Positions 10,175-58,416 of a DNA stretch of 64,000 bases are shown here, piece after piece. The stretch lies in sequence record ON287375.1. One strand, 5' to 3'. The translations under genes and the position numbers were made by a program. The first letter of the stretch is position 1. Each line of letters opens with the position of its first letter. A model generated the notes under the pieces. The model was not told the DNA's origin, did not search any database, and was given only the letters and a program-made list of their open reading frames with translations.

Positions 10175-10213
10175 AGTAAACAATTTTTAATTAACCTATA
10201 GAAGGAAAGAATT

Positions 10214-10543
10214 ATGAAAGATATTAAAGCACCTACTAAAATGGTTTCTGCACTGGCCGAAGAAGAACATAAGCTGGGCGCTCATTATCATGGTAGTAAC
10301 GAACAGTTCGGCATAGTAACTCATCGCCATCATCAATTACTGACCATGGCTCGTGAAGAACGCATCACCGAGCTGGAAGATAAACTGGAGAAAGCCATGA
10401 ACTATGACTTTGATCTAGTTGAAAGCATCCAGGAAAAGATTGACTTGTATACCGGCATGACTGATGTGGAATATAAATCTTATATCCGTACCAAATTGCT
10501 GTATGCTAGTAACTCGATCAAACCAATCATTCCAACCAAGTAA
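10214..10543 (+). CDS. hypothetical protein
   Basis: tatagaagga leader. Confidence 0.85.
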   Translation: MKDIKAPTKMVSALAEEEHKLGAHYHGSNEQFGIVTHRHHQLLTMAREERITELEDKLEKAMNYDFDLVESIQEKIDLYTGMTDVEYKSYIRTKLLYASNSIKPIIPTK

Positions 10544-12910: not shown

Positions 12911-12920
12911 TAATAACTTT

Positions 12921-12944
12921 ATGCTCGGTTTAAATATCGGGCAT
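12921..12944 (+). terminator. hairpin
   Basis: atgctcggt-ttaaat-atcgggcat after a stop codon. Confidence 0.5.
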
Positions 12945-12975
12945 CTAAATTAACTCATTCAGGAAACTTATAGAA

Positions 12976-19577: not shown

Positions 19578-22500
19578 TTATTCTGGTTTAAGTACGAATT
19601 GTTTCAGAGTTACTGGTGTCTCTACATCACCTTCACCTGTCGTCTGGAAACCTTCACCTAAAGTCAGTTGCTGATAGCGAGGAAGTTGATTATAAACCAT
19701 ACTTGCATTCGCTGTTTTAACCACATTACTTGGATTGGTGTATTTCAATGAAATACTAAATCCAGTATTAGGTATTTCAGCATCTGTGTCACTGGTGAAT
19801 TGTAACTTCAGAGAATCCTTACTGAGTGAGTTAGCAACTACAGTAACTTTAGAGTCATTGGTGGGACCAACAACCAGTTTAGAGTCAGTTAAAGGAACTT
19901 GAGTCTTACCATAGTAGACAATTAACTTAGTCAACTGCTCGTCACCAAACTTACCTTTAAATACATAAGGATCAGGTTGTGAAGCATACAGAGTTTCTTC
20001 ATCCTTGATGACCGTGATTCCCATCATGTCAACTACATAGTCAATACCTTCCACATCACTAGTAGCTGACTTAATTTTAACCTTCAGCGTCATCGCACCA
20101 TTAACTACGGTATTGCTTGCATTACCATTAAATCGGTAAGTGGTTTCTTTAGTAGTGCTATTATAACCAAGTGGAGTAGCGTCGGGTTTAACATATTGAG
20201 CACCACTTAACTGGGTTACAGTAAGCTCACCAACCGGGATACCTTTCAATTTACCAGAGAAGTAAACCGGAGCATATCCACCAGTATAGGTTAGAAATTC
20301 CCCATTAGGCCCCTTAGATGTATCACCATACCGATGAGTGATTACCAACTCTTTACCATCATAACTATTGATGGTGAACGGAACTGTGACTTTAACCTCT
20401 TCAGAATCAGCGGCATACTTATAGGTATATTCCACATTCTGCTTGGTTAAAGATATGGCTTTATCAGAGATGATCTGATATCCGCCTTTCAGCCCATTAT
20501 GCTTAACCAAATCAGTTTCAATGAAACTAATAGAGTTAACGTTGCTGGTTACATCTTTACCACCTAATGTGAATTTAAGTGGTGAAGTGTCACTCTTGTC
20601 CCATACGTTTACTGTAGGATCAGTTTTTGTTACAACTAGTGCACCTACGAGCTTAACATCTAATGGGGATTCAGTAACCATTCCACCCGCATTTGCTTTC
20701 ACCTTAACAGAAACAGCTTTGTCATAAGGAACTTCTTGCAAGATTTCAAACGTTAGTGCTGTTTTACTTCTCATTGCGATACTTATAACATCTGAAGGTT
20801 CAATAGACCAAGCTACACCAAAATCATCTAAGTTATAATTAGTTTCACCATTAGTTAATTTACCATTAACTGTTATTCGGGAACCCTTACTGCCTGAGAT
20901 TTCAGTTTGATCCAGAACTAATTTGAAGTTACTAGAATCAATAACAGCATAAATAGGATCGAGATAGCTTTGTGTTTCAATCGTTCCGTTGGTAAGAGTG
21001 AATGCAACAAACCCTTTCCCCTCAACACCAGCTCCTGTAACAACAACACTATAAACGCCATCGCCGATCTCTTTAAAGTTCTTAGGTGAAACAACTGATC
21101 CACCCGACCCAAGTCCACCACCTTTGATAGTTACCCCAGTAGCTGGTTTACCACCTAATGTGATCTTGAACTTCATTTCTGTTTCTGCACCTTTGACACC
21201 ATTAAACTCGGTATCTATCGGCTCAGTAACAAATTCGGCCTTAGGAACAGGTATTTCTACATTAAGGTAAGACAACCCTGAGAATGTTGGATCTGAAACA
21301 GGTCCAGTTATACGTAATGAAGTTCCTGAAGTTCCTGCTGTAAATTCCAAAATAAATTTACTTTGGTCTGTCGGATCCTTTTCTAGAGTATACCCTTCAG
21401 ATAAAATTATGGCATTCCCATTGGTGGGTATTGGGATGATTTTATTACTGAGTAGTCTAGGGTTGGTTAATTTATTGTTGCTATTTTTCAGTGTGAATTT
21501 AATTTTATTTTTAATTCCTGGGATAACTGTATCGGCTGTATCGAGTACCGTATCTTGAACCTGAGTACTTGAATTAGGGTAAACCCAGAAATTGGCGTCA
21601 TTTGGAGCTGGTTCGCACTTATATTTATCCGGGTCTGAGGCTAGTCTAAATCTCCATGGGTTATAGTAGCCATTATTATTCCCAATAAACCCTCTGGTTA
21701 TTTTTAGATATAATGTTGTACCTAAACCACCTGCCAAAGTACAAGCTATCTCACCACGATCATTACCGGACACTGTTCCGATCCTAGGATAAAACTCTAT
21801 ATCTGGGCTATCTAATGGAACTCTGACACCGTTCTTAAATAAATAAAGCTCTGTTTGAGAACCTGTTCCATTAATATTGGTTCTTGGGAATTGCACAGAA
21901 CCCAAGGCCCCAGAAATACCACTACCCATTCCATAGACACCGAGTATATCACCCATAACGAAATAATTGATATCGTTTATTGTCACGGCATTCAGGTTTT
22001 CAATATTTCCATCGGTTCCTTTAAGTTTTACTTTTAAGGAAGTAACTGTAGGGGCGTTTGTTCTATTGGGTGATGTTAAAGAGGTACTAGCCCTAATGGT
22101 AACCTTTAAAGAATTGTTGTCGCCAGATGGGGTTTGGGAAACTAACTTGACATTCACATCTAAAGACCCATGGTTCACCAGTTCGAGCATATTTCCGGCT
22201 GGTTTGCCTTTAAATGTTCCCACTAATTCATAATTGGTATCCTGAGCTGTAGAAGCACCAATTACTTTTTCTTTCATAGTTACATCTAATACTTTACCAG
22301 ACCAAGCAGCGATCTGATAAATACCATAAGCTACTTTGGGTTTCCAGTTACCTGTTACATTAACTTCAAATGTAAAGAAGGTAGATTTAGAAGCGCCTGC
22401 TGTAGGGGCAGTATCAACAACCCAATGACCAGGGTTTTCAGGATCTTCTTTAATATATTCGTTAGCTACCAATTTCAGATTACGAATCTGAGAAGTAACA

Positions 22501-33200: not shown

Positions 33201-34369
33201 CCTACTTGTTCAACAGTATTAGGGAAGTTGGTGCTCAAATGACCTTCATAGATCATAGAACCATCGGTATCATGACCTGTGAATTTCAGAGGACCAAAGT
33301 TACCTTGCTGGAGCATCTGGGAAGGTGGCGCTGTGATCTTAACTTCTTTACCTTTGTAGAAAGCTTTGATCTTAACAATTACATCAGAACCAGAAGGAGC
33401 TGTAACTGTAGGGGGATCAATCTCAAAGGTCAGATCAAGTTCATTATCTTTCTCGATAATTACATTGATCTTAAACGTTTTCTTAACGGGACGGTTTTGC
33501 CACATATAGGTAACACGGACAAAGATCTCATCGTGAACTTCTTTCTCAGCAGAACCATAAATGGTTTCACCCAGAATGAAGTTACCGTCTTCAGAACGTT
33601 TAGGAATAGTGTAACCAGAACCCGTACTGATCTCGATCTGAGCTTCATGGGTAATGTCGATCGTGGTGTTGAACCAGTAAGTGTTTGGGATGCTGAAGTC
33701 TTTACCACGTTGAGTAGTAATAGACTCTGGCAAGTTAGACGTGATTCCAGGGACATTAGCTTCATCCAGAACCAGTTCATAAATGAACAGCGGATAAGTA
33801 CCAGTACCGAAAGACGCATCAGTGATTTTAACAGTACCTGATTCCAGGGTGTCGTAATCAATGAAAGTCAGAGATTCACGTTCAGTGACATACTCACTAA
33901 AGAACAGTTCACCAAAAGCAGCCATTGGGCCAGAGATAGTCTTAGCTTCTTCTTGAGAAACCAATACACCATAGTTGTTCAACCACTTACACCATAACAG
34001 TGCATGATCAACTTTATTGGCTTTAACATAAGCTTTCAAGTTATCCAGGTCTTCGATCTCGATCATAGGAACGGCGAAGTCTTCCAGGATATCTTTCATC
34101 TGTACACGAGTGATGTCGACGTCAACACGTGCAAAACCGGTTTTGCGCGCAGTAAAGCAAACGCGAGTAATACCATCTGGGAATGCTACTGGATTCTCAA
34201 TAACTAAATCACCAGCAACAAGTCCAGTGTAACGCTCTTTAGCGAGAGCTAACTCGTCCTCAGGTCCTTCAACCTCAAGGCGTTTGATACGTTCCTTTAA
34301 GAAACGCTCAACAGGCGTGTATAACGGATCGTTAATACACTTTTTGTTAATCTTAATTTGCTCTGCCAT
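24248..34369 (-). CDS. giant Ig-like repeat virion fibre segment 1, 3373 aa, with conserved N-terminal domain
   Basis: Start at ATG 34369 (MAEQIK) after aggag SD; ~200-aa N-domain plus ~29 repeats of ~100-115 aa. Confidence 0.92.
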   Translation of the reverse strand: MAEQIKINKKCINDPLYTPVERFLKERIKRLEVEGPEDELALAKERYTGLVAGDLVIENPVAFPDGITRVCFTARKTGFARVDVDITRVQMKDILEDFAVPMIEIEDLDNLKAYVKANKVDHALLWCKWLNNYGVLVSQEEAKTISGPMAAFGELFFSEYVTERESLTFIDYDTLESGTVKITDASFGTGTYPLFIYELVLDEANVPGITSNLPESITTQRGKDFSIPNTYWFNTTIDITHEAQIEISTGSGYTIPKRSEDGNFILGETIYGSAEKEVHDEIFVRVTYMWQNRPVKKTFKINVIIEKDNELDLTFEIDPPTVTAPSGSDVIVKIKAFYKGKEVKITAPPSQMLQQGNFGPLKFTGHDTDGSMIYEGHLSTNFPNTVEQVGGLYTAEFTYNEGDVTSKAPAYVNVILTRPETAPKFEIRSFPAVIRGYKNDKGLLTVGAFYNNEPISPTDLQIKTGVKGDKGLIEYNSVDQLGVNYTLIKDANKPGQEIQDVYDQRFAWIAPTGVRYTITRQVTVIVAQVSTVEVVPLYPNPIEVKKYQFGGYPFKLLVNGADVTGGISGYQFEDPSEYITHKKGSDVQWIVTKTPGADEESIVTKVPFKFRYTVDGVWRDFTFEQNFRVLPWNPDTGEGGNTDTVAVPANVKIEGLSDSTGYFEFQVYHLADDITDRAVVMKDKLVTPKGIRFDSFSYIPETNVIRANYTKLDPTTEPGKVYIQRPGVDDPKTGDIAIVSITTDVKQSRVLVLSDYDKNTTVEVAGSPELAHITLMFAGKVVPLTDANLSYKRLDETDIRFVDIKDDGIEVVNNIWEYIGETRQSGVDLEYTYTDPLDGNKTKVRFTLPVFTVYPEMRLENAPATIDAAIWDTGTLPYNIIAGKTNWNGAVTSITPIGTSKYIAFNVFNWEVIWAEKEATTITVPLEIKWTVGQAKNRKFITEVTFNLPAWDQITFGGQLDTKSITKDSRVEGSITGNFVYKGKPADDDVVLDKAMSTIPETFIMGVSAPVENKGVVVGYTTTRGGKYLMTLIYRHVPSNLTMSFDIPTDIAWPHELNLVNITKSISGVWESEQTIDLVYNFDGIPLTLNDPKLKLTATSGAGEPVELVKVNDESLTIKLAKGGEQDTDYDYEFKIHVEYTDPTGKLWTNDNTVPVKIHIPGVKIGANPSFNVKVWERGIVGITLVDDQGRKVPIEKLTPRGTNPYITFTEPDNWYVTSGSQTNSITTTLRLSAQYSMGGNTYTLDTESTFTIAKYDGKKLVITEGPKELSGKAGTPGVMKFRFTYAGDPAKNLTVDLTKSTIPKNITLGEITPDGDLPYTLLGQATDTLTITFVRENATNPPVVNDDYVTTTVKVTTTSSDEVFTVESKTPAITIPWMETGTIVLALKYGEYPILGNTPGLKYSLVDNGKPHAIHIVGGTADGVIIQATRSNVSEALTVYPEDIKVTYEVGAPTPKEGTISSKVSIQMGKVGITNNDPIKGKIWDLGSFGQGIKMGDKVLSPIQGYKTTQPENEWIEFIAPRGWEIINAEKTPSTKTIGMQVLYKVDEVEEVQVLDFDASFEIQGSDDPTRFKCTVSPSNLEGAVDVESKLKVRPIYKGKQVGAAATFKPELSTFPKSLKYVSHSMAGVDFELVFEGVEAGLGEMELVFWSPAAGTDPAPRDVWKGKVPTKIMGELGVEIADRDNLLIGKDGDTGEYKLQILFGGIPIDAKQEIANGALKITVEKGEGSSPNAGVLTVTDWNAESFNYSLKGVVAPGREVTVSDFMNITYTYGGNNFTRRVEIPEKYTSAPVAIVPVTPKACKMFETSQIGITSAKCGDLNLLTPSLPSPAESGWMNCELDEEQPNGYITVSVKNFTVVNADVTAKSLTLKMIYNGIYRNWTWKGEAEVVFNIAPWDQKTFIAHFMRGNPSQPIAGDRLALSLEMPMDDESILFETQTVFKDKVSFNDVDTLDYLDTDLKGVLELNKSSPLGGTGASDNRRRYFGQAVSPYEGEIKLVFRVPNSPKPGVENLDWTALYLDCKFIYKPLLVTGINNNLKGGNGDKGTLPLTVKLNDKNIPINDANLKYTMVPDDIIKVTGSTTTGYTYEVITPLDAELGKREIKFSLEYKDPATGFTHKGEFTQPFEVVKPADYPIITPIRVSVAPFNRVGGSTIFKITVNGVDVVSQCKPISITPVNSADEGVLVLAGDEANDNAWMWCTDYHIGNPPSAEIKTTWVIEVPFRGGTIQVPDVVLPTLVASSTSHAVWIQGTGAPNPFPLGDGYEDEIRFKITNRGLPTTKVTLDEAAGSYGPYFEVISVEPDGDEMVLKYKGKSSFFAKFNFYWKVEGYDGTNDTQQRGVVQLNAYQIPSIESVTDPLSLKIFQQFELPFKVMAGTTDITKLCTWTAVDTDYIEIFRPINTQLGPSGQVVKADTTEVKKEVIFTIQSPASHGNLTLTQKVNIIIAAWDQIEFYGIPTTGFVKQDDGLVVPIPFTNTWNAVIVQAMMMNKVRPNGGGVSSLSDFLKITSSDPDAVTQISQISDGNGVTSRIMPNKAGKFPGTMVLRYKGNAAEASAPNGYPAGTEGKNQSTIDVTWYVFEDKITFREGFEPKPLIIPNGSTAVIDVPFDAVWGLRQVMINSTAEVNFVGLSHDTGIASLFGQNNTTGTNRFNWDKDRYKIQPAKITVGESDVTSYYTFNIQWINPINKKNYSFSYDQPIIFKGKEGAKDPVLTVTDVQEVTTDVWKKQTGLPFKLAIDGVNYPIDTSTVTSVKVADADKAWLEAGPKLTDGYRVIDGDPEPSVKEGTFILTVVQGPRTWEIEQKVKFNISAYDGNSLRMNIRLPNSFNNGVAIPVNTNTLIMFEGTFQGVALTNNYNKLSYWPAKSSQTQIEVYGQTFQQMYYQLSAKGILDSQDSEQATYCIGFKEKENDPNAKEGVDYVILTIPTYCYNPNRFYPVTWDPVIEGMAGTNLNYKWNFTLRRGIVASKLGSGTNAASSTDIKPAGVLNRTGFSDNQLEYAFASEIDVATKETDMTIMIGNTSDFDTMAARFPVKAIQHTNVPFPTIKDPQTELTVHYNDTGAVPFKVDWKGTDVTDQISIVRISDNSYIEIKDKQWHVKHADPQTVKVMPTIEADIVLDSVTFTLKQQVTFTVLGYNGKQINVEAGFALLMVDEVGYLEIKGDYSGDPLSGNVIFDAANSDNGGIVTFGAYEFTTNESMVIKLTGKAPGEDGVRIRIKSVHDTGNGNIGSDYVDLYPKVTVLPKELTPAARFETTGEGNYWEPPVLGQAVMLGDKPLANTDSDLIIEILDYPDVTIKTLSSATVGYSFTNNSDTEIKHQFKQKFTYKGRSEYVVDITLTQLPSPTTPFVTDITQIDAEYGKSYLAPFKVISPR

Positions 34370-34440
34370 TAGCAGGCTCCTTTTCAAAAATAGAGATTCT
34401 AAACTTTACAGGCTTTAAAGCAAAGGATTCCTAACTCCAT

Positions 34441-34449
34441 ACCATAATA
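34441..34449 (-). promoter_or_regulatory. putative late promoter, TATG core
   Basis: tattatggt upstream of the 3373-aa gene, just after a hairpin. Confidence 0.4.
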
Positions 34450-34453
34450 AAGA

Positions 34454-34475
34454 GAACCCAGGTTTCCCCAGGTTC
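34454..34475 (-). terminator. hairpin terminator
   Basis: gaacctggg-GAAA-cctgggttc followed by tcttt on the minus strand. Confidence 0.65.
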
Positions 34476-34483
34476 CCTTCAGG

Positions 34484-37312
34484 TTATTTGGTACCTTCTA
34501 TAGAGATAACTAATGGATAGAAGTTAACATCTGGAGATGGGAATCTGAATATAGCGTCAGCAAAGAAAGAAGTACCTTTAGTTGGTTTCTCAGTTGCTTT
34601 AACTTTAACATATCCGATACCAGTTTGACGATCATAAATAAGATCAATCTTTCTGGCTTCTATATTGACGTTGTGTTTCCAGAAGTCATCAATACGAATT
34701 AACTTAGGAATCCCACCGAGGGCGTCACGGAACAACCAACGATAAGTGAGTATCCCTTTATCGAACTTGTGATCCAACTCGGTAGCTGTAGCTGCTGGGC
34801 CATAGTAAAAGTCGCCAGTAGAAACTTCGGCACTATAGTTAGTCCCAACAACATCAACAATGAAATCAATATTGAAGTTAGTTACTTCTTTAACACTACC
34901 CAACTCTCTTGAGTGTTTGATTTCCCCAGTAAGGAAATTATACTCGAAGTTCATTGGATAATTTTCCATGTCATCTGGTTTGACCACAGAGAGTGCACGT
35001 GGAATAGCTGTGTTAGATTTAAGTTGGTGGGTAAAGATAATACGTCCATCTTTAATTTCGTACTTAGCTAACTCGGTCCAATAACGAGGTCTTGGTTTAT
35101 GGACTTCACTAACCGAAACAGATTGAATGTGACTACCTTCCGCACCAACAATTTCCAGTTTAGCCTTCAACGCATATTTAACTTGTTCGTTATCAATAGG
35201 CTCACATTTGATGTTAAATGTCAGGACACCTGTTTGATCATCGAAGTTCTGTGCGTAATCAACCGTCTTCTCAACATAGACATTGGAGATTTGCTCCACG
35301 CCTAACAGCTTGACATCAGTAGGTAATGAATGGTCTTTGAGAATTGGTGTGATTTTAACAATTAACTGATCGCCGATAACTACGGTGTTTTTGTTGAATG
35401 CAGCTGGGAAGTTATCCGATCCAAATTTAACCTTGCTTTGAAAGGGAGTTTCCAAAGGTGATTCATAGCCAGGCAGAATGGTCTTACCTTTAACAATGTG
35501 CGTTTCAGCTAAACCAGTTGGAGTGAATTTAAACAGGATTGTCAGAAGTCCATTACGGTAAACGACCTTAGGTGCGACTACTTCAATGCCGTTCAACTCA
35601 ATACGGTTACCAATGAGTTCTAAAGCGGCAGGAGACGTCCCATCAGCAAAGGTGGGGCGTAATACCACTTTCTCTACATCATTCACTACAGAGTGTTCTA
35701 CAACCTCATATTGAAGTTGCGTTCCACCTTCTGGTTCAGGGATATAATCCACAGTCTTAAGGTGTAAAGGTACTTTAACAAACACACCAGTCTCTACTAC
35801 AACAGAACCGATAATCTCAACTTCTATAGCTTCACTGGTTTGAGCAGGTAATTCAAAGTATCCTGTAACCTTATTATTAGAGGTATCCAAATTCTGAATA
35901 ACTTTAATAGATGATGGAATACGATTAACCAGCAAATGTAAAGAAGTGGCATCAATTGATTTGATCTTAGAATCAGAAACTAATGAAAACTCATAAGACA
36001 TGGATTCTTCATTGTCTCTAACAATCGACTCGCCGTAGATTGCAATTGGATTAATAGTTGCTTGTGTCATCCAAGGTACTGGCTTGTTGTCAATAATGAA
36101 ATGACCACGGAGTTTATAATTCAACTGTCTACTGATATCGGTGGCAACTTCCCAAGAAGCAATGAACTCATTAGTCCCAGGAATCCAATCAACTCTAGGG
36201 CTTAAACCACCAATCAAATTAGAAATAAAATCTGCTGGAGGAACATGCAAGTTCTGGAGTTTGTAATTCCAATCTTCTTTAGAATTAATACTGAAACGAA
36301 CCTGAACAATACCAGAACTAAAAGTTACTGTCTCAACATCTGCTCTGTAAGTTGATTGATGTGTATAGCCGACAGTTAAGTTGAAATCAACGGCTGGGTA
36401 ATCTTCAGCTTTAGCTTTGGTAATAAAGTTGTAATCTATAGTCCCTTCTGGAACAACACTCACTACAATACCAAACTCATACAACCCTGTTTGAGAATCG
36501 TAACTAATGGTGTTAGGTTGGACGATACCTGTAGGTACATTATTACCATATAGGAATGGTGTCACTAATGAGAAAGAACTTGGAGGTAATCCAGTATCAG
36601 CCCATTTAACTTCCATCATAATGTGGAGAGTCTTTTCTTTGAGAACTTTGCTGATAACTTTATAGTTAATAGTTTTAGTTCTTTCCAAACGCCCTTCAAA
36701 AGAAACAACTGCACCTGGTTGATCTGGTGTAGATCTAACTGCTGACTGATATTTCATATCAGCGTACTTAGCTTTGCTTTTAGCTTGGTATTCCCCGATC
36801 AACTCACCTGTGATTGGGTTATAGGTTTGAGATACAATTTTGTTACTAACTAAATTACCGGTAGGTTCTGCTTCACCATCAAAGCAGGCAAACTTAGGAA
36901 TTTTACCGTTAGTTCTTCTTACCTTTAAAGTCACGACAAACTTGTCATCATGGAATTTAAAGGAAGGAGATTTAACTTCCAAAGCTGGTTCTGGAATACG
37001 AAGCTTTTCGTTATGCTCAAAAGGTGTGGGATATTTCTCACCGACAATGGCATAACTACCAGTGATCACAAATGGGACTTTAACATCTGGATCTGTTTCG
37101 GTCTCCACCTTAAACACTGTGCGGTAAGTACCTGTATTTGGTTCATAGCCTTGTGATTCAGGTTTGGTATCAATTCCCTTAATTTCATTAAGGGAAACTT
37201 GTTTAGGATAACCGCCTCTTGTGTAGCGAATGACATGCTCCACAACTAGACGATCGATACCTTCTCTTTTTATTCCGCCACTAAGATATATAGTGGTTGG
37301 ATGATCGATCAT
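34484..37312 (-). CDS. Ig-like repeat putative virion protein, 942 aa
   Basis: SD ggagg; ~9 repeats carrying a Y/F-x-x-x-T-G motif. Confidence 0.85.
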   Translation of the reverse strand: MIDHPTTIYLSGGIKREGIDRLVVEHVIRYTRGGYPKQVSLNEIKGIDTKPESQGYEPNTGTYRTVFKVETETDPDVKVPFVITGSYAIVGEKYPTPFEHNEKLRIPEPALEVKSPSFKFHDDKFVVTLKVRRTNGKIPKFACFDGEAEPTGNLVSNKIVSQTYNPITGELIGEYQAKSKAKYADMKYQSAVRSTPDQPGAVVSFEGRLERTKTINYKVISKVLKEKTLHIMMEVKWADTGLPPSSFSLVTPFLYGNNVPTGIVQPNTISYDSQTGLYEFGIVVSVVPEGTIDYNFITKAKAEDYPAVDFNLTVGYTHQSTYRADVETVTFSSGIVQVRFSINSKEDWNYKLQNLHVPPADFISNLIGGLSPRVDWIPGTNEFIASWEVATDISRQLNYKLRGHFIIDNKPVPWMTQATINPIAIYGESIVRDNEESMSYEFSLVSDSKIKSIDATSLHLLVNRIPSSIKVIQNLDTSNNKVTGYFELPAQTSEAIEVEIIGSVVVETGVFVKVPLHLKTVDYIPEPEGGTQLQYEVVEHSVVNDVEKVVLRPTFADGTSPAALELIGNRIELNGIEVVAPKVVYRNGLLTILFKFTPTGLAETHIVKGKTILPGYESPLETPFQSKVKFGSDNFPAAFNKNTVVIGDQLIVKITPILKDHSLPTDVKLLGVEQISNVYVEKTVDYAQNFDDQTGVLTFNIKCEPIDNEQVKYALKAKLEIVGAEGSHIQSVSVSEVHKPRPRYWTELAKYEIKDGRIIFTHQLKSNTAIPRALSVVKPDDMENYPMNFEYNFLTGEIKHSRELGSVKEVTNFNIDFIVDVVGTNYSAEVSTGDFYYGPAATATELDHKFDKGILTYRWLFRDALGGIPKLIRIDDFWKHNVNIEARKIDLIYDRQTGIGYVKVKATEKPTKGTSFFADAIFRFPSPDVNFYPLVISIEGTK

Positions 37313-37337
37313 ACTTCCTCCGATATCGATACTGTTT

Positions 37338-37348
37338 GGACATAGAAT
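37338..37348 (-). promoter_or_regulatory. putative late promoter, TATG core
   Basis: attctatgtcc, sharing ATTCTATG with the 16301 site. Confidence 0.45.
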
Positions 37349-37355
37349 CTGATAA

Positions 37356-37383
37356 AGAGTTCCTGGGTTAACCCAGGAACTCT
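37356..37383 (-). terminator. 28-bp perfect palindrome / terminator
   Basis: agagttcctgggttaacccaggaactct directly after the 1035-aa stop. Confidence 0.75.
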
Positions 37384-37390
37384 AATACCA

Positions 37391-40300
37391 TTAAGGTTCT
37401 ATAGTGAGTGTGATACGGGTACTTTGGGAACTACATTTAACATCGGCATTGCTAAACCAAATTTCATAGTCAGTGCTAGCTTTACTCATGACATAACAGG
37501 TAAAGGTCACAGTCTTTTCATCAATGGCTTTGGCGTCTCTGATCCAGTTAAATGTATTGGTTCCGCCTTCTGTAGCTCCATAGGTGTAATCTCGTTGTAC
37601 CACGAACTTATCAGAAGTTATTCCGTTTTCTGGAAGTTTGACAGTGAATACAGCAAGATCCCTTTCTTTATCGTAGACAACCGATACATTACCAGGGTCA
37701 ACTGGGATATAGTCAAACTCTGTTCTATAGGTATATTCGACACCATCAGCTAAGATGACAATATTAGTCGCACCGCTATCAGGTTTATTGATACCGTTTA
37801 TATGCATACTTAAACTTCCGGTACCATAAAGACCTTGGGATGCCTTAGTGATACTTAGTGGTCCAGTACCTTCCCAAATACCAGGTTCGAATCCTTTCAC
37901 TTCCCATTTATCAACGTAGACAGTGTTTCCTTTCTCGTCGATAACTCTGAATATTCCAGGGGTACTATACTTGACCATGTTCCCCCATTCACCCACTAGT
38001 TGTTTACCACCAGTATACCCGTACCGTTGTTCAAAGGAGATTTTAGGGTAACCGATATATCCATACGCTGAACCAACACCTTCCATGAGAAGAGTATCAA
38101 CAACAGTTTCATCTAAACGGTTGAACTTAAGTCCATAACCTGTATCATTCTCGGTTATGTTCACGCTGTTCCATGGAGCACCATTCAGTTTCACATTACC
38201 ATAAATACTTGGCTTGGTAACTGGGGTTTTAGCTGGGTCATTAAAGAAGAACTTAATCTTACCATCAAACTGGAATTTAACATCTGTGGCATCTAAAGAT
38301 TCAGGTTCTGCAATAATACCAGTAGCTCCTGCTGGCATCGGCATTAGACCTTCAAAGGTCCCATTCATATAGGTTGATGAGTTAGGAACGCTCTTATCAT
38401 CAAACCAAAGGTTATTGGTAACAGATGTTGCTTCAGAGAACTGTGGTGCCGTAAAGGTTATACGGTACATGTCCTCATTTCTAGCATTAGCGGTTTTTAT
38501 TTCTGAATCGAATGTTTTCTTAGTTCCATTCTCAGTATAAGTCAATAAAGCAGTGGAAGCGCAGATAAGGTTTTTAGCTGAAGTATCCTCTCCAGATACG
38601 CCTATATCCATGCTTGCCATTGACGTACTGGTACTCATCCCACTATACTGATTGAAGAAGATTTTCTTTCTTTCAATTTCTTTACTGAAAGTAATCTCAT
38701 CAGAACCATTAACTAATACACCAGAGATCTTAGATTTGGTTGGTGCATCTGGATTCAACTGGAATGATAATGTATAGTGTTCGCCGTCAGGAGTCGCATT
38801 GATAGGTTCCAGTACAAACCCAGTACCGGCGATATCCTTATAAGACCATTTATCAGCTTGAGCTTTAGGGTAACTACCAGTTACGGTCAGAACACCTAAT
38901 TTAAGATCAGAAACCTCTACATCCATAGCGGCTTGCTTGACATCAGTAGTCATTGTGATCGATGCATCAGGAACATCAAGGTAGTCTGGGAATGAGAAGT
39001 TTACAACGGTCTCCAGAGACAAGTTATCCGTTTCTAAGGCTTTGTCCTTGACTGAGAATTTTAACAATTGTTTCTGAGTAAGATCTTTATCAACAATTTC
39101 ATAATCGACTACCTCACCACCGACTTTAGTTACGATAGTAATGGTCGGGTTAACCGCATCACTATTGTTGGATGGGAACTTATACTCAACTTCATAATTA
39201 ACCAACTTACTTTCGATATCAAAAGTATTCTTAACTTCTTTTAATTCCACAGCTTCTTTAGGCGTAGGTGGAACTAGCTTATAAAACCAACTTGGACTAT
39301 TGAAGGTGCTGAATGCAACTTGACGATCAAGCTCACCTTTAAGAATTACATTACCGGTGAAGTAGCGAAGTGCTGGAGCTTCTGGATTATAATCATAAGG
39401 GCCAGTAAAGTTAATGACGCCAGCAGAAGGGGAAGTGATGTCAGTGGCTACTGCATCTTTCATTTCCTCATCCCCACCATTAATAAGGTAAGCTTTATTA
39501 AGGTCGAGAGTTCCCACACTGTCTTCATAAGTAAGTGTGATTTGAGCTTTATCTTCGCTCAACTGTTTTACTGCGCCAGAGAGTCTCAAGACTTTAGGTG
39601 CCGCATGGTTGATATTGTAAGAATAGATCTCATTATCAACCTTCATCATACCTTGCGCCATAAAGATACGATCAGTTAAAGCGTCGGTATTATATTCCCA
39701 GCTCACTACCATACACTGACCATTTTCAGTGATTTCCTGAGTGGTCTTGATATTGAGAAGATCGGTACTTTTAGTTGGATCATTAACAACCCAAGCAGTA
39801 GGTGTTCCTTTATTACCATCTTTATCTAGCAAGTAGATATTTGCAGTCATCTTACCGTCGGCTAGTGAAACCACTTTAGAATCAACAGTGTATTTATTAG
39901 CTGCATCATTATAAGCTTTCTGTGAAGTAAGCTTAATGATCGTATCATTAATGGATGGGTCAATAATGGTTAAATCACCACTATAGATTTCATTCAATTT
40001 AGGGAACTCATCCCAGGTTATTTTAGAGAAGAAAATATTACCAAGCAGCTCAAGAACATTTGCTTTGAGATTATCGGTGTTGGGCAATATGATAACCAAC
40101 TGATCGGCATCTGTTCTATTAACAAGGAATCCAGGTTCAGGGATTTCTTTATTTAAGAAAGCTTTGAACTCATCTAACGTACTAGTGTTCTTTACTGGTA
40201 CATTGAAGGTTTCAAATATTTCTAAGATATTCTGCTTCTCTATCTCGATATCCACACGAGCAAAACCAGTCTTACGAACGGCAATGCAGACCATAACAGA

Positions 40301-40498
40301 ACCACTCTTAACTTTAGTAGCTGGCTCTATGGACACATCTTTGTAAGTTAGACCAGTATAACGTTCTTTAGCTAATGCTAGCTCATCTGCTGGACCATTA
40401 GCCTCTAGATCAGCTAAACGTTTATCAAGGGCTTTCTTAACACACAACCAGACAGGATCCTTTATGTTCTTGTCTTTTTCATCTAATACTACAGTCAT
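37391..40498 (-). CDS. putative virion fibre protein, 1035 aa, with conserved N-terminal domain
   Basis: SD ggagga; N-terminus homologous to the 3373-aa and 201-aa proteins; beta-rich repeats. Confidence 0.88.
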   Translation of the reverse strand: MTVVLDEKDKNIKDPVWLCVKKALDKRLADLEANGPADELALAKERYTGLTYKDVSIEPATKVKSGSVMVCIAVRKTGFARVDIEIEKQNILEIFETFNVPVKNTSTLDEFKAFLNKEIPEPGFLVNRTDADQLVIILPNTDNLKANVLELLGNIFFSKITWDEFPKLNEIYSGDLTIIDPSINDTIIKLTSQKAYNDAANKYTVDSKVVSLADGKMTANIYLLDKDGNKGTPTAWVVNDPTKSTDLLNIKTTQEITENGQCMVVSWEYNTDALTDRIFMAQGMMKVDNEIYSYNINHAAPKVLRLSGAVKQLSEDKAQITLTYEDSVGTLDLNKAYLINGGDEEMKDAVATDITSPSAGVINFTGPYDYNPEAPALRYFTGNVILKGELDRQVAFSTFNSPSWFYKLVPPTPKEAVELKEVKNTFDIESKLVNYEVEYKFPSNNSDAVNPTITIVTKVGGEVVDYEIVDKDLTQKQLLKFSVKDKALETDNLSLETVVNFSFPDYLDVPDASITMTTDVKQAAMDVEVSDLKLGVLTVTGSYPKAQADKWSYKDIAGTGFVLEPINATPDGEHYTLSFQLNPDAPTKSKISGVLVNGSDEITFSKEIERKKIFFNQYSGMSTSTSMASMDIGVSGEDTSAKNLICASTALLTYTENGTKKTFDSEIKTANARNEDMYRITFTAPQFSEATSVTNNLWFDDKSVPNSSTYMNGTFEGLMPMPAGATGIIAEPESLDATDVKFQFDGKIKFFFNDPAKTPVTKPSIYGNVKLNGAPWNSVNITENDTGYGLKFNRLDETVVDTLLMEGVGSAYGYIGYPKISFEQRYGYTGGKQLVGEWGNMVKYSTPGIFRVIDEKGNTVYVDKWEVKGFEPGIWEGTGPLSITKASQGLYGTGSLSMHINGINKPDSGATNIVILADGVEYTYRTEFDYIPVDPGNVSVVYDKERDLAVFTVKLPENGITSDKFVVQRDYTYGATEGGTNTFNWIRDAKAIDEKTVTFTCYVMSKASTDYEIWFSNADVKCSSQSTRITLTIEP

Positions 40499-40537
40499 CT
40501 CTTCCTCCAGAGGGAAAGGTTATATTTAGTCAGGGTA

Positions 40538-40546
40538 TGACCATAG
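40538..40546 (-). promoter_or_regulatory. putative late promoter, TATG core
   Basis: CTATGGTCA, identical to 16301-16309. Confidence 0.5.
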
Positions 40547-40559
40547 GATCCATACATAT

Positions 40560-40589
40560 AGAGAAGAGGGCCCGAAGGCCCTCTTCTCT
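40560..40589 (-). terminator. hairpin terminator of nrdB
   Basis: 13-bp perfect stem with a UUCG loop on the minus strand. Confidence 0.8.
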
Positions 40590-40607
40590 TTAATATGTGT
40601 TTATTTA

Positions 40608-41741
40608 TTACAGTTGGAAGTCGTCGAAAGCACCTTCATCTACAGCAGAGTCAATCTGACCTACCAGGTAGGAAGATACTTCTACTTCTTGTGGAGCCAC
40701 CTGAACGTTATCAGATACCAACCAAGAGTTGATCCATGGAATTGGGTTAGTCTTAGTCAGGAATGGGGTACTCAGACCAATTGCATTCATGCGGATGTTT
40801 GCGATGTATTCAACATACTGGCACAGGATCCCTTCTGACAGACCAATCATAGAACCATCTTTGAACAGGTAGGCTGCCCATTCTTTTTCTTGTTCCACAA
40901 CTTCCAGGAACATATCAATAGACTGTTGTTTACACTCTTCAGCGATTTCCACCATCTCTGGATCATCTTGACCATATTGCATCAGGTTCAAGATGTGTTG
41001 GGTACCAGTCAGGTGCAAAGCCTCATCACGTGCGATGAGCTTAATGATCTTAGCGTTACCTTCCATCAGCTTACGTTCTGCGAATGCAAAGGAGCAAGCG
41101 AAGGATACGTAGAAACGAATTGCTTCCAGTGCGTTAACAGACTGCAGACACAGATAGCAAGCTTTCTTAATTTCACGCAGGGTAACAACAACACGTTTAC
41201 CATTCACGACGTGTGTACCTTCACCCAGGTAGTAATACTGGTTGATCAGACCGATCAATTCATCATAGTACTTAGATACGGTACCGGCACGACGAGTGAT
41301 GTGTTCGTTATCAACAACGTCTTCAAATACGATAGACGGATCATTAACGATGTTACGGATGATGTGAGTATAAGAACGAGAGTGGATCGTTTCTGAGAAG
41401 CCCCAGGTTTCTGCCCAAGTTTCCAGTTCAGGAATAGAGATGATTGGCAGGAATGCAACGTTAGGACCACGACCCTGTACAGAGTCCAGCAGCGTTTGAT
41501 ATTTCAGGTTACTGATGAAGATATGTTTTTCATGTTCCGGCAGGTTCATGTAGTCAATACGGTCACGAGTAACGTCTACTTCTTCAGGACGCCAGAAGAA
41601 AGAAAGTTGTTTCTCAATCAGCTTTTCAAAGATCTGATGTTTCTGTTGGTCGTAACGAGAAACGTTAACGTTCTGACCCAGGAACATGTGTTCCAGAAGT
41701 TGGTTGTTTTTGTTTTGGTTAAAGGTTGAGTAACCGGACAT
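40608..41741 (-). CDS. nrdB: ribonucleotide reductase class Ia beta subunit
   Basis: Follows enterobacterial NrdB throughout ([49 protein letters not shown]); start ATG 41741 after ggag. Confidence 0.97.
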
Positions 41742-41979
41742 GATGTTCTCCAATAGATAATTTTGTTTACAGGAATTTGCTGTTAGCTAATGATTAGTGT
41801 TGGAATAAAAACTTAAAGATAACCTAAAATAAATTCTTAATGGAAGACGCTATTATACGTTAACTTAAAGATGCTTTCACCGAAAGGTGGGAGGGAAAGG
41901 GTGGATTTGTTTATATAGCGATTACGTAGTAATCATCCTTTTAAGTCTTTTGAACTTTCACTTCAATTTTCTTTTGGGT

Positions 41980-41999
41980 AGATATTATCTACGTGTATA
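41980..41999 (+). promoter_or_regulatory. putative early promoter, copy 3
   Basis: agatattatctacgtgtata; perfect TAGATA-T-TATCTA palindrome at 41979-41991. Confidence 0.7.
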
Positions 42000-49312: not shown

Positions 49313-49527
49313 CTTTCTTCATCATCATTTTACTTGTGGCGTTCATTATCTTTAATGCATGTGCGTTACATTATTATGGTGATAGCTTCGAACGAGATCT
49401 TTATAATTTCGTTTGGAAGTTTAATTTCATTTTATCTTTATCCTTGGCGTACTTAGTGTACGCCTTCTTTAACATGCTGGTAGAATACAGATACCCGACT
49501 GAGGAAGATTATGAAGACTTTGAATAA
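49291..49527 (+). CDS. small membrane protein, 2 TM
   Basis: Two hydrophobic segments; overlaps neighbours. Confidence 0.7.
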   Translation: MEKTIKLTFFIIILLVAFIIFNACALHYYGDSFERDLYNFVWKFNFILSLSLAYLVYAFFNMLVEYRYPTEEDYEDFE

Positions 49528-50701
49528 GTACGAAGCTTGGTACATGGAACAGTTGAACAACATCGTTAGTAATGGACAGCTTCGTGGTGACCGTACTGGA
49601 ACTGGTGTATTGTCATTGCCAGATCTCGAATACCGTCATGATCTGCGAGAGTCTTATCCTGTCCTGTTCTCTCGTTGGTTTAACCTGAAGTTCCCCATCA
49701 TCGAAATCAACTGGATGATGTCGGGTGAAGGTAACATCAAGCAACTGAAAGAAAATGGTTGTCCTTTCTGGAATAGCTTTGCAGTTCAGGGTGATAAAGT
49801 ACTTCCGACCGAACTTAGTCGTACAGAGCGTCTGAAACATCTGGCCATCAAGCAAGGCGTTCCTTATGGTAAGGTTCTCCAGATCTTTGGTTCCGAACGT
49901 CCTGAAGATATTGATATCGAATTGGACAAACAACAGATCCCTAACACTCAGGATATCTTAGTTGCTAAAGACGGTGACTTGGGTCCGATCTACGGTGTTC
50001 AGTGGCGTCACTGGCCGAACCCAGATGGTTCTACCTTCGATCAGTTAACTTATGCATTGGAAACCCTCCGTAAAGATCCTGATAGCCGTCGTGTTGTCGT
50101 GGATTGCTGGAACCCAAGCTATCTACCTGATCCAAAGAAAAGTCCAGCAGAGAACGCTGCACGTGGTAAAATGGCATTGACCCCATGTCACTTTACTTTC
50201 GGGTTCTACACTTGGGAAATTCCTTTCCATGAACGTGTAGAAGAACTGAAGAAAGTTTGTTCTCGTGAAGAGTGGATGTCGGTATACCCTGTTCATCGTA
50301 ATAGTGGGACTATCGAAAAGATCGACCGTTTAATCCAGAAGTATAATGTTCCTAAATACTATCTGGATCTGAAGTTCCTGATGCGGAGTAATGACTGGGT
50401 TCTGGGTCAACCTGCAAACATGAACATGTATTCAGCTATGCTGATGATGTTCGCTAAAGAACTGAACATGGTAGCGCGCTTTGTAAAATATACCGGTTGG
50501 GATGCACATGTTTATTGCAACCATCTGGAAGGCGTTGAAACTTTGAATGAACGTTGGGCAACTGGTCAGCATAAATACTCCACTATCAAAATGGTATTGG
50601 ACTCTGAACCTAAAGGGTTGTTTGGTTACCATCACGATGACTTTAAAGTTGTCGGTAAGTACGAACCACTCTCAAGTATCAAATTCCCTATCGCAATCTA
50701 A
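49511..50701 (+). CDS. thyA: thymidylate synthase with two insertions
   Basis: DRTGTG, LGPIYGVQWR, SRRVVV..WNP, MALTPCH, RSNDWVLGQPAN, DAHVYCNH. Confidence 0.95.
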   Translation: MKTLNKYEAWYMEQLNNIVSNGQLRGDRTGTGVLSLPDLEYRHDLRESYPVLFSRWFNLKFPIIEINWMMSGEGNIKQLKENGCPFWNSFAVQGDKVLPTELSRTERLKHLAIKQGVPYGKVLQIFGSERPEDIDIELDKQQIPNTQDILVAKDGDLGPIYGVQWRHWPNPDGSTFDQLTYALETLRKDPDSRRVVVDCWNPSYLPDPKKSPAENAARGKMALTPCHFTFGFYTWEIPFHERVEELKKVCSREEWMSVYPVHRNSGTIEKIDRLIQKYNVPKYYLDLKFLMRSNDWVLGQPANMNMYSAMLMMFAKELNMVARFVKYTGWDAHVYCNHLEGVETLNERWATGQHKYSTIKMVLDSEPKGLFGYHHDDFKVVGKYEPLSSIKFPIAI

Positions 50702-50749: not shown

Positions 50750-51643
50750 ATGAACCATAATGAAATTAAAGCTATCGCTGGTGTTGCTTCCATTCAGACC
50801 ATGATCCGTGGTGTTGGAACCATTAAGAAAATTCAAGAACTGAGCGATGTAAAAATCGACGGCTTAGTTGGACCGTTCACCTACAATGCGCTGAACTTTA
50901 TTGCTGGTGAAATCTTTGGCACCAAACCTTATGTTCCAGATGGCATGTATCGCCCTGAGGACGGTATCCTGGCACTTCAGAAGTGGTATGAAGGTGTTCG
51001 TACCACCATGGTCCCTCGTCGTGCTATGTTGCAACCACAACTTGAATGTGATGGGGTTTGGGGCGATGAGACTTATAACACCTTTAAAACTCTTCTTCAT
51101 AGTTATGGCCACCGATTAATTGATGAACAAGTTGGGTCTGTTCGTAAAGGCACCTTAGCTCGTCACCCACTTGCTGAACGTCCATACATTGGTGGTAAAC
51201 AAATTCCCGATGTAGCCGACGGTAAAGTTCTCAAAGATCATCCTAGTTCTGAATCATTCATGGGACCTGGAATGACTAGCCCAGACATGCTGGAGATGTT
51301 AGCTAAAGCGATGGGTTGGGATAACCCGGTTGTTTCTCCTGCCAATTTACTGGCTAGCGGTTATGAAGGTATCGTAACTCACAATACTGAAACCGGTGAC
51401 ATCTTGGGTGTGCTGATTTACAGGAAACCAGATCGCCCTACTCGTTTATATGAATTCAGTATCGTCGGAATTTATGTCCATGAAAGTGTTCGTGGTAAAG
51501 GTATTGGGACTGCTTTGGTTTCTCGTCTCACCAGCTTAGCTGATGGTCAACAAACTACCGTAAGCTATACCAACCATCGTAACAGACCTGCTGATGTTCA
51601 TGTGGCTAACTTCCTTGGCCCTCGTAAAGTAACTATCAAGTAA
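50750..51643 (+). CDS. peptidoglycan-binding-like domain + GNAT acetyltransferase fusion
   Basis: IDGLVGPFT and CDGVWGDET (PG_binding_1-like); IYVHESVRGKGIGTAL (GNAT motif A). Confidence 0.75.
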   Translation: MNHNEIKAIAGVASIQTMIRGVGTIKKIQELSDVKIDGLVGPFTYNALNFIAGEIFGTKPYVPDGMYRPEDGILALQKWYEGVRTTMVPRRAMLQPQLECDGVWGDETYNTFKTLLHSYGHRLIDEQVGSVRKGTLARHPLAERPYIGGKQIPDVADGKVLKDHPSSESFMGPGMTSPDMLEMLAKAMGWDNPVVSPANLLASGYEGIVTHNTETGDILGVLIYRKPDRPTRLYEFSIVGIYVHESVRGKGIGTALVSRLTSLADGQQTTVSYTNHRNRPADVHVANFLGPRKVTIK

Positions 51644-51649
51644 CATATA

Positions 51650-51677
51650 CCCTCTACTCCTTAACGGGAGTAGAGGG
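51650..51677 (+). terminator. hairpin terminator
   Basis: ccctctactcc-ttaacg-ggagtagaggg; identical core to 10100-10125. Confidence 0.8.
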
Positions 51678-51706
51678 GTTCAGTTTCACTTGTATTCTTT
51701 TTCAGA

Positions 51707-51726
51707 CATATATAATTAAAGTGTAT
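51707..51726 (+). promoter_or_regulatory. putative early promoter, copy 5
   Basis: atatataattaaagtgtata. Confidence 0.55.
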
Positions 51727-51782
51727 AAGACAATAAAGTTTTATACAACTAATCTTAATCAACTTATAGAGAGATATAAATC

Positions 51783-52133
51783 ATGGCTAACAATTTCGCA
51801 AACGTAGAACACTTCGCTGACCGTAACGTAGATGGTCTGGCTTACATGAAAGATACCCTGGCTAACGTTATGGGTGCAAACACCAAAGCTGATAAAGCTG
51901 AAGAGTTCGGTTCTTTCTCCATGGCTGCAATCAAAGCTCTGGGTCGTAAAGCATTCGGTGCTATTCCACTGTTCCGTACTAAACCACAGAACAATGGCGT
52001 AATGACTTTCCAGGCATTCTTCAATGACTTCGCTGAAACCAACAACATGTCTCAGCGTCTGCGCATGACCGGTGTTTGGGATGATGCTACTAAAGCTGCC
52101 TTCGATATGATGGTTGCTAAGTACAGTGCATAA
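51783..52133 (+). CDS. stand-alone peptidoglycan-binding-like protein, 116 aa
   Basis: tatagagaga leader; aligns with the N-domain of the upstream fusion; LRMTGVWDDATKAAF. Confidence 0.8.
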   Translation: MANNFANVEHFADRNVDGLAYMKDTLANVMGANTKADKAEEFGSFSMAAIKALGRKAFGAIPLFRTKPQNNGVMTFQAFFNDFAETNNMSQRLRMTGVWDDATKAAFDMMVAKYSA

Positions 52134-52140
52134 TGAATTG

Positions 52141-52181
52141 GCGTCGACAGTACAGGGAATTTATCCTTGTACTGTTGATGC
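52141..52181 (+). terminator. long hairpin terminator
   Basis: gcgtcgacagtacaggga-attta-tccttgtactgttgatgc, 18-bp stem with GU pairs. Confidence 0.75.
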
Positions 52182-52221
52182 TATATTTAGTTAAACTATT
52201 TATTTTTGTTTCGGAGATCTA

Positions 52222-57922: not shown

Positions 57923-57944
57923 TTTAGTTGGATGAAATTTCAGA

Positions 57945-57965
57945 CATATATCATTTAAGTGAATA
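57945..57965 (+). promoter_or_regulatory. putative early promoter, copy 7
   Basis: catatatcatttaagtgaata. Confidence 0.5.
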
Positions 57966-58012
57966 TGAACAATAAAGTTCTTAAACCTTAACTGACTATA
58001 GAGAGAAATATC

Positions 58013-58354
58013 ATGACTACTATCAACCAAGAAATGATCAACAGCCTGAATGAACTGAACGTTAAAGAGCTGCCAAAAGAAGGCTTCCTGAATACCAACC
58101 GCAATATGCTGGGTGGCTTACTGGGTGCTGCAGTTTCCGTTGGGCTGGAAGTAATCAGTCCAACTGGTTCTAAAGTTTCAGCTACAGTTGCGGCGGCCGC
58201 TAGTCTGGGTACTCTGTATGCGGGTCGCAAAATTGCTGAAGCAGCTCCGCAGTCTAACATCACTGCGGCTGCTATCGGCGGCGTGACTTGCTATACTGGC
58301 ATGGTTGCAGGTCGTATCGCGGCGTGCTACTTCCCTGGCAATCTGGAAGAATAA
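58013..58354 (+). CDS. Gly/Ala-rich hydrophobic (glycine-zipper-like) protein
   Basis: LGGLLGAAVSVG, AAIGGVTCYTGMVAG; own leader and terminator. Confidence 0.8.
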   Translation: MTTINQEMINSLNELNVKELPKEGFLNTNRNMLGGLLGAAVSVGLEVISPTGSKVSATVAAAASLGTLYAGRKIAEAAPQSNITAAAIGGVTCYTGMVAGRIAACYFPGNLEE

Positions 58355-58362
58355 GATAACCA

Positions 58363-58382
58363 AGGCTACCTTCGGGTAGCCT
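58363..58382 (+). terminator. hairpin terminator
   Basis: aggctacc-TTCG-ggtagcct with downstream T-run. Confidence 0.8.
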
Positions 58383-58416
58383 GTTATTTACTTCTTTATT
58401 TTTTTTTGGTGAGAGT

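Follow-up and report, generated by a model that had tools for sequence, protein, structure and literature searches.

Two apparent paralogues of a phage endolysin wall-binding domain, one fused to a GNAT module and one standing alone, in OBP-like jumbo phages

What might two adjacent genes of related sequence, one carrying an acetyltransferase module and the other encoding a single small domain, do for a jumbo phage? The question arises from a 64-kb stretch of sequence record ON287375 (the window, whose coordinates are used throughout unless stated otherwise), which is identical to the record of its source, Serratia phage vB_SmaM-Yubaba (255.7 kb, genus Petsuvirus), a jumbo phage of the OBP-like clade. 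The two open reading frames (ORFs) are 100% identical to YUBABA_01040 and YUBABA_01050, both annotated as hypothetical in the Yubaba record, while the homologue of the longer protein in the sister phage Sureiya is annotated as a 'peptidoglycan binding-like protein'. A sequence-only reading of the window had proposed that the longer protein binds and acetylates a cytoplasmic target, with the shorter one acting as a sponge or regulator. The two genes are as follows:

50750-51643, + strand: YUBABA_01040, 297 residues, endolysin-type peptidoglycan-binding-like domain, disordered linker and GNAT domain (from the ORF, the Pfam GNAT match and hhalign comparison with the endolysin peptidoglycan-binding domain)
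51783-52133, + strand: YUBABA_01050, 116 residues, stand-alone four-helix paralogue with the motif Asp residues replaced and strong codon bias

The N-terminal domain of the 297-residue (long) protein and the whole of the 116-residue (short) protein are true paralogues. Pairwise BLASTP aligned them with an E value of 6e-5 at 22% identity, in the same three blocks from which the sequence-only reading had recognised their likeness, and comparison of the two family profiles with hhalign gave a probability of 97.8% and an E value of 1e-12 over 109 columns, spanning the entire short protein and residues 3-121 of the long family. The AF2 model of the short protein, built on a joint alignment of 16 sequences, has four helices (residues 3-30, 44-58, 72-86 and 101-115) and was predicted with good confidence (pLDDT 86.7, pTM 0.80). 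In a Foldseek search of BFVD, this model matched the short orthologue of phage pEt-SU (TM 0.82/0.87) as well as the long paralogue of the same phage, a 342-residue 'N-acetyltransferase domain-containing protein' (E 1.3e-4, TMq 0.66); further matches were a 296-residue entry, probably OBP_236, and a 150-residue entry, probably the domain-only protein of Kc263. Two unnamed viral proteins, A0A7D7IG52 (125 residues) and A0A4Y5TM42 (317 residues), also resembled the model (TMq 0.77 and 0.63, 13-14% identity), and from these structural matches the domain may be shared beyond the OBP-like clade.

A third copy of the domain bears on what it is. Searching whole phage genomes with the domain profile placed this copy, in Yubaba, OBP and pEt-SU, at the N-terminus of a protein of ~290-330 residues encoded directly after the virion RNA-polymerase beta subunit (YUBABA_01420, OBP_279 and pETSU_200); OBP_279 is the characterised endolysin OBPgp279. 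The N-domains of these endolysins exceed the Pfam PG_binding_1 threshold (24.6-25.1 bits against 23, with 25.1 bits for the Yubaba protein), and hhalign aligned the endolysin peptidoglycan-binding domains (PBDs), that of OBPgp279 included, with the N-domain of the long protein over the full domain (probability 97.3%, E 2.1e-11, 100 columns). The short family is linked to the endolysin PBD through the long N-domain as an intermediate, because its direct link to the endolysins is weak. An EGFP fusion of OBPgp279 residues 1-117 attaches to the cell walls of Pseudomonas and Salmonella once the outer membrane has been permeabilised (Walmagh et al., PMC3352856), and the domain is made of two subdomains, each with a D-G-Pho-Pho-G-x-x-T motif, neither of which binds alone (PMC3352856). 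The OBP1-117 unit matches both the short protein and the long N-domain in size (~116 residues) and layout. Below the Pfam thresholds, PG_binding_3 was found in 10/10 long members and PG_binding_1 in 6 of the 11 short ones, and the nearest ESM-Atlas clusters of both paralogues were PG_binding_1 and PG_binding_3 (0.91-0.92, taken as a lead only). On profile homology, then, both domains appear to be paralogues of the phage's own endolysin wall-binding domain, and the label 'peptidoglycan-binding-like', at which the sequence-only reading had also arrived, appears to be correct.

The Yubaba endolysin paralogue, YUBABA_01420, lies at 155341-156204 of record ON287375 (locus L027 542-1405), where it is annotated as hypothetical. 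It is an orthologue of endolysin OBPgp279, with a PG_binding_1 N-domain above threshold and a weak SLT-like match in its C-terminal part. Its overall identity is 31% to OBP_279 and 71% to the pEt-SU protein, and its C-terminal catalytic part is unlike that of OBP.

Domain searches found no lysozyme, transglycosylase or amidase catalytic domain in the long or the short protein, and where the Kc263 and Survivor homologues are labelled 'muramidase' and 'lytic transglycolylase', these names probably stem from the binding domain alone. Nor did hydropathy reveal a signal-peptide-like hydrophobic N-terminus or a transmembrane segment in the long, short or endolysin proteins (maximum KD19 <1.0). Both absences had been noted from the sequence, and a cytoplasmic target had been proposed; the missing signal peptide is no argument for such a target, because the endolysin paralogue lacks one too.

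The binding motifs were compared across the three copies, taking as reference the repeated D-G-Pho-Pho-G-K/N-G/N-T of the Briers/Walmagh consensus (PMC3352856). In the long protein they lie in the N-domain:

50750-51133, + strand: N-domain, residues 1-128, bipartite and peptidoglycan-binding-domain-like, with both D-G-Pho-Pho-G-x-x-T motifs (DGLVGPFT and DGVWGDET)

In the joint alignment, the endolysins and most long paralogues retain both motifs. Both motif Asp residues are replaced in all nine short paralogues (9/9; AEEFGSFS and TGVWDDAT), where motif 1 reads x-E-x-x-G and motif 2 reads T-G-V-W-D/N/S-x-x-T. The short family has invariant residues of its own instead, namely N3 N4 F5, H10, R14 N15, R55, F58 G59, P62, R65, N71, T75-Q77, N81, F83-E85 and N87. 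Because both hallmark Asp residues have been replaced and other positions fixed, a plain sponge for the same ligand, as had been suggested for the free domain, is unlikely. In the phylogenetic tree the endolysin (support 0.999) and short (0.997) copies each form a monophyletic group arising inside a poorly resolved long group, a topology indicating that both duplications are older than the radiation of the clade.

The remainder of the long protein consists of the following parts:

51134-51235, + strand: linker, residues ~129-162, predicted disordered and variable (pLDDT <50 for residues 130-162; most substitutions relative to P0008 fall here)
51236-51640, + strand: GNAT domain, residues ~163-297 (PF00583, Foldseek)
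51491-51508, + strand: motif A, R-G-K-G-I-G, the acetyl-CoA pyrophosphate-binding loop, residues 248-253 (read from sequence)
51230-51624, + strand: recombinant cassette with ~50-60% DNA identity to Sureiya in ~99% surroundings; divergence starts at ~51120

The GNAT assignment, together with the motif VRGKGIG (residues 247-253), had been made from the sequence and was borne out by domain searches: the long protein matched PF00583 at 32.2 bits (cut-off 20.7) and PF13508 at 28.1 bits (cut-off 27). Since the model of the 297-residue protein was based on 7 sequences, with pLDDT ~50 in the N-domain and 70-86 in the GNAT part, only the latter was used. Foldseek matched it to RimI (7n1l), AAC(3)-Ia and SSAT (E 2e-5 to 4e-4, TM by target 0.5-0.67), the RimI and AAC(3)-Ia matches having E values of 2e-5 and TM by target of 0.6-0.67. 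No specific GNAT subfamily was matched in NCBIfam, where all hits were far below the cut-offs. With motif A defined as Q/R-x-x-G-x-G/A, it is canonical in four of ten phages (Yubaba, SXP01, Survivor and pEt-SU); in four others it is degenerate or lost, and the remaining two have no GNAT domain.

Comparison with Sureiya showed that the GNAT part has a history of its own. The DNA of the two phages is ~99% identical, with the N-domain and the short gene at 100%, and between ~51120/51230 and 51624 identity drops to ~50-60%, giving 46% protein identity in the C-part within an ORF of the same length. The synonymous divergence (dS) of this cassette is ~2.1, against 0.04 in the N-part, and its ratio of nonsynonymous to synonymous divergence (dN/dS) is ~0.23; these values mark the cassette as an old allele that entered through recombination at the linker and not as the product of rapid change in situ. 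P0009 shows the reverse mosaic. The cassette is one of ~4 sharply divergent islands in the 64 kb, the largest other one lying in the giant Ig-fibre genes. The other stretches that diverge between Yubaba and Sureiya, elsewhere 96-99% identical, are 10203-10333, 12911-12964, 21084-22281 (a 1.2-kb island within the giant Ig-repeat fibre genes) and 33791-41027, which is only ~93% identical.

A separate family of stand-alone GNATs (~160-177 residues) is encoded directly upstream of the dihydrofolate reductase (DHFR) gene in OBP, AH04, Kc263, SXP01 and a metagenomic relative, at these positions of the respective loci:

L004, 5352-5834: stand-alone GNAT, OBP_240
L009, 5096-5590: stand-alone GNAT
L008, 3695-4228: stand-alone GNAT
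L007, 5617-6102: stand-alone GNAT
L011, 6104-6595: stand-alone GNAT

Yubaba, Sureiya, N1M2, Survivor and pEt-SU lack this family, and it is present in all three genomes in which the long gene is domain-only (AH04, Kc263 and L011). That the fused GNAT replaces the stand-alone one as a rule was considered and rejected: the two forms occur together in SXP01 and OBP, and the motif-less fusion of L012 is not accompanied by a stand-alone GNAT.

The short gene is set apart from the long one by its expression signals, which are the following:

51650-51677, + strand: terminator-like hairpin ending the upstream operon (z -5.2; kept in nine phages through compensatory changes)
51700-51723, + strand: phage-specific early-type promoter TTTCAGACATATATAATTAAAGTG (N1M2/OBP consensus; PMC7058600, Supplementary Table 4)
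51724-51782, + strand: leader with ribosome-binding site, found near-verbatim in the leader of the ORF at 58013
52139-52183, + strand: strong terminator-like hairpin of ~20 bp closing the one-gene cassette (-33.3 kcal/mol, z -9.9)

The 139-nt spacer upstream of the short gene is conserved across nine phages as the hairpin followed by TTTCAG-TTG...TTTCAGAC(A/C)TATAT(A/T)A(C/T)..AAGTG. The site at 51700 matches the degenerate search pattern exactly and has one mismatch to the published consensus TTTCARRYAKATATTATYWAAGTG. This promoter element was reported at 31 sites in N1M2 (Lewis et al., PMC7058600), where the orthologous site is listed as 'pORF 187' in Supplementary Table 4; OBP shares it, and there it was judged early, a timing for which PMC7058600 cites the work on OBP; a relationship to the phiKZ TATATTAC element is also described (PMC7058600). 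The promoter TTTYARRYAKATATWATYWAAGTG has six copies on the + strand of the window (686, 10147, 41972, 51700, 53935 and 57938), where 0.02 would be expected by chance. A stricter pattern found nine sites genome-wide, all on the forward strand and 50-100 nt upstream of small hypothetical genes, and none in the control. A sigma-70 promoter scan returned nothing relevant, as expected since the phage has its own RNA polymerases.

Codon usage points the same way. The effective number of codons (ENC) of the short gene, 28.5, is the lowest of the 71 ORFs of the window, the next being 33.4 and the long gene 42.2. Its dS relative to N1M2 is 0.55, under half that of the thymidylate synthase (1.24) and DHFR (1.35) genes, as expected if codon usage constrains synonymous sites. 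In a tick metatranscriptome run (X19), the sole contig on the 3.5-kb stretch was 218 nt long and identical to the inside of the short gene (51797-52014), which is compatible with high expression, although it is anecdotal and DNA carry-over is possible. The promoter, leader, terminator and biased codons that the sequence-only reading had ascribed to the short gene were all found, and they suggest that it is highly and early expressed.

The ORF at 58013-58354 (113 residues, Gly/Ala-rich, pI 5.4) shares with the short gene the early-type promoter and, with few differences, the ~100-nt leader and ribosome-binding site (region 57938-58400). It has the third-lowest ENC of the window (35.3) and a strong terminator downstream, the promoter of its N1M2 orthologue is listed as 'pORF 197', and it seems to belong with the short gene to a class of early cassettes with high expression.

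The two paralogues also evolve differently. The short family was found only in OBP-like phages of Pseudomonas, Serratia, Klebsiella, Kosakonia, Erwinia, Pantoea, Edwardsiella and Shewanella. A word search gave seven clusters and a scan of IMG/VR found no relatives of the 116-residue protein; because the deep search of 1.84 billion proteins returned only four cluster representatives, the family appears to be truly narrow. Within the clade it is about as conserved as the flanking enzymes (35-85% identity to Yubaba, dN/dS ~0.2) and is under purifying selection. The long paralogue evolves quickly in both halves, much faster than the flanking enzymes, with 19-56% identity in the N-domain and 19-46% in the C-part; that of L012 had no match in the phage collection. 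A search of PADLOC and anti-defence families gave no match for the gene pair.

Both genes lie on the + strand between the thymidylate synthase gene upstream and, downstream, genes for a HAD phosphatase and then DHFR, and this order (thymidylate synthase, long, short, HAD, DHFR) was kept in all relatives examined. One further feature concerns the operon:

41972-41995, + strand: putative operon start, the nearest upstream early-type promoter on this strand (operon membership of the thymidylate synthase and 297-residue genes inferred)

The long gene has no promoter of this type of its own; the first such site upstream of it lies at 41972, so that the gene probably closes an operon of ~9.7 kb ending at the 51650-51677 hairpin. 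The thymidylate synthase (49511-50701) has 396 residues; since it matches the Pfam model of 266 positions end to end, it must hold ~120 residues of insertions, and its length (~395 residues) is conserved across the clade.

Taken together, these findings suggest a model to which we give roughly an even chance: both genes would be ancient duplicates of the bipartite endolysin PBD, the long one docking a GNAT on peptidoglycan-derived material and the short one having become a neofunctionalised early binder. In this model the PBD-like domain of the long protein, with both motifs, would bring the GNAT through the flexible linker to its target, either cytoplasmic precursors and muropeptides or the sacculus after membrane breach, and the GNAT would N-acetylate an amine on the docked material. 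What has been shown comprises the homologies, architecture, motif states, regulatory elements and evolutionary pattern, whereas the ligand and the acetyl acceptor, like the level and timing of expression and any cooperation of the two proteins, are inferences. The 116-residue protein would be an early binder, made in abundance, whose ligand or partner has changed, because it has an early promoter, hairpins, codon bias, purifying selection, both Asp residues replaced and invariants of its own; it would not be a plain competitor for the same ligand. Joint action of the two proteins is suggested by their conserved adjacency and shared ancestry only.

Several results weigh against this model. Compared directly by hhalign, the short family and the endolysin PBD gave only a weak match (E 4.5e-4, probability 33%). 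The long protein falls below the Pfam thresholds for peptidoglycan-binding domains, with only PG_binding_3 at 16.4 bits against 24.6, the Yubaba short protein has no such Pfam match (the best short-family member has an E value of 0.056), and a PF01471 search of the single genome missed both. Foldseek, which the sequence-only reading had named as a check of the peptidoglycan-binding fold, gave no significant match between the 116-residue model and the PDB; a profile of the joint domain likewise gave only chance-level matches against PDB sequences. In VIA, the best match of the model was to CH-like domains (Z 5.5), and the PG_binding_1 domains of SleB-N, SltB3 and an L,D-transpeptidase (Z 3.3-3.5, 56-62 residues, root-mean-square deviation 2.6-3.2 Å) came below the CH-like hits at Z 4-5.5. 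The CH-domain similarity itself (2-8% identity, deviation 4-5 Å) was judged to be a generic helical arrangement and was set aside. As for the enzyme, Sureiya (RGNHIG) and N1M2 (RDASIG) have a degenerate motif A, OBP_236 and L012 have lost it, and the whole GNAT module is absent from AH04, Kc263 and metagenomic L011, in which the gene is domain-only (128-150 residues). For this reason acetylation cannot be a conserved function of the long family; the acetylation foreseen by the sequence-only reading keeps its basis in Yubaba, where the loop is intact, but does not extend to the family. Since phages of the clade can do without motif A, catalysis may be relevant in some lineages only, Yubaba included. 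Finally, the gene pair is located in an early nucleotide-metabolism operon, apart from the lysis genes.

The rapid divergence of the long paralogue invites another explanation, in which the PBD-derived domain has become a protein-recognition adaptor, the GNAT acetylates a host defence, transcription or translation factor, the short protein blocks a related host protein, and an arms race drives their evolution. The GNAT cassette is one of the ~4 sharply divergent islands between otherwise ~99% identical phages, the largest other island lying in the Ig-fibre genes, and both halves of the long paralogue outpace the flanking enzymes. The closest solved folds include the protein acetyltransferase RimI, phage GNATs modifying host proteins have precedent, for instance Rac (PMC7552054, PMC7824862), and the short paralogue has lost the peptidoglycan-motif Asp residues while gaining its own invariants. 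We nevertheless regard this explanation as unlikely, though worth keeping in view, for the long paralogue has retained both peptidoglycan-binding motifs in most phages, the swapped cassette is an old allele with dN/dS ~0.23 and no signature of positive selection in situ, the PADLOC and anti-defence families were unmatched, and the short paralogue, highly conserved from Pseudomonas to Shewanella hosts, is unlike typical anti-defence proteins.

That one domain type is common to all three proteins raises the thought that the free PBD-like protein, and perhaps the long one too, pairs with the endolysin domain or competes for its docking site, restraining the endolysin or timing lysis. The OBP PBD works only with both of its subdomains (PMC3352856), and the short paralogue is apparently abundant and conserved along with the endolysin throughout the clade. 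Such regulation seems to us very unlikely, given that the short-gene promoter is of the early type, whereas endolysins act late, and that the short paralogue and the endolysin PBD resemble each other only weakly. The two genes could also be independent leftovers of old duplications, with no joint function and the long one a dispensable accessory with a decaying GNAT. Adjacency is what tandem duplication itself produces, half of the long paralogues have a degenerate motif A or none, the GNAT is missing from three genomes, and the L012 copy is unmatched in the phage collection. Against this, the long ORF is intact in all genomes examined and equally long in Yubaba and Sureiya, although their C-parts are only 46% identical, dN/dS is ~0.2 for both the short gene and the swapped cassette, and the pair has preserved its order from a time before the radiation of the clade; we consider this explanation quite improbable. 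A bolder extension of the docking model strikes us as equally doubtful: the short copy, early, abundant and altered in its motifs, would bind peptidoglycan precursors or recycled muropeptides in the cell, or regulate the endolysin, no phage enzyme before the GNAT-fused copy would have been known to acetylate peptidoglycan-derived molecules, and the two together would give nucleus-forming-type jumbo phages a new way of reprogramming or disarming the wall pathway of the host.

To our knowledge, no role other than the targeting of muralytic enzymes is known for the wall-binding domains in Gram-negative phage endolysins. In the present case such a domain appears to have undergone two duplications whose products persisted throughout the history of a jumbo-phage clade, one copy with GNAT chemistry and the other alone with a remodelled binding surface. 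Should the ligands be wall-derived, the phage would be manipulating the precursors or the turnover of peptidoglycan long before lysis; should they be proteins, a wall-binding fold would have been recruited for host takeover. Both proteins are small and easily expressed, OBP1-117-EGFP offers a positive control, and the Yubaba/Sureiya GNAT-cassette swap is a natural comparison. The component families are already known and the new part is the GNAT fusion and the stand-alone, motif-altered copy: the literature searched described neither a fusion of a wall-binding domain to a GNAT nor a conserved stand-alone copy of this kind with signs of high early expression.

Among known systems, FemX and the FemABX enzymes are GNAT-fold proteins that act on peptidoglycan precursors (UDP-MurNAc-pentapeptide, lipid II) and would offer the closest functional parallel should the long protein have a peptidoglycan precursor as its substrate. 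They use aminoacyl-tRNA and have two GNAT lobes, no sequence relationship to the long protein was detected here, and the comparison is a lead only. AcrVA5, an anti-CRISPR protein, is a phage GNAT acting on host molecules. The small GNATs (RimI, AAC(3)-Ia, SSAT and Rac of phiKMV-like phages) share the GNAT fold and motif A with the long protein, Rac being a phage precedent (PMC7552054), but no specific subfamily is matched and motif A is not conserved across the orthologues. PG_binding_1 (PF01471) and PG_binding_3 (PF09374), as in the KZ144 binding domain and the SleB N-domain, share the succession of helix, DG-x-x-G-x-x-T loop and helix (a partial superposition covers ~60 residues at 2.6-3.2 Å); they differ in being single domains of ~57 residues, whereas here the unit is a duplicated bipartite four-helix one, sub-threshold in both proteins and superposed at Z 3.3-3.5. 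A further one is the PBD of OBPgp279 (OBP1-117) with its Yubaba counterpart YUBABA_01420: the domain type agrees over its full length (~115 residues, two subdomains, two motifs), neither has a signal peptide, and all occur in the same genomes, peptidoglycan binding having been shown for the endolysin copy only (PMC3352856). There the domain serves a muralytic partner; here the long protein joins it to a GNAT and the short one consists of it alone, the genes belong to an early operon or cassette, and the short copy has parted with both motif Asp residues.

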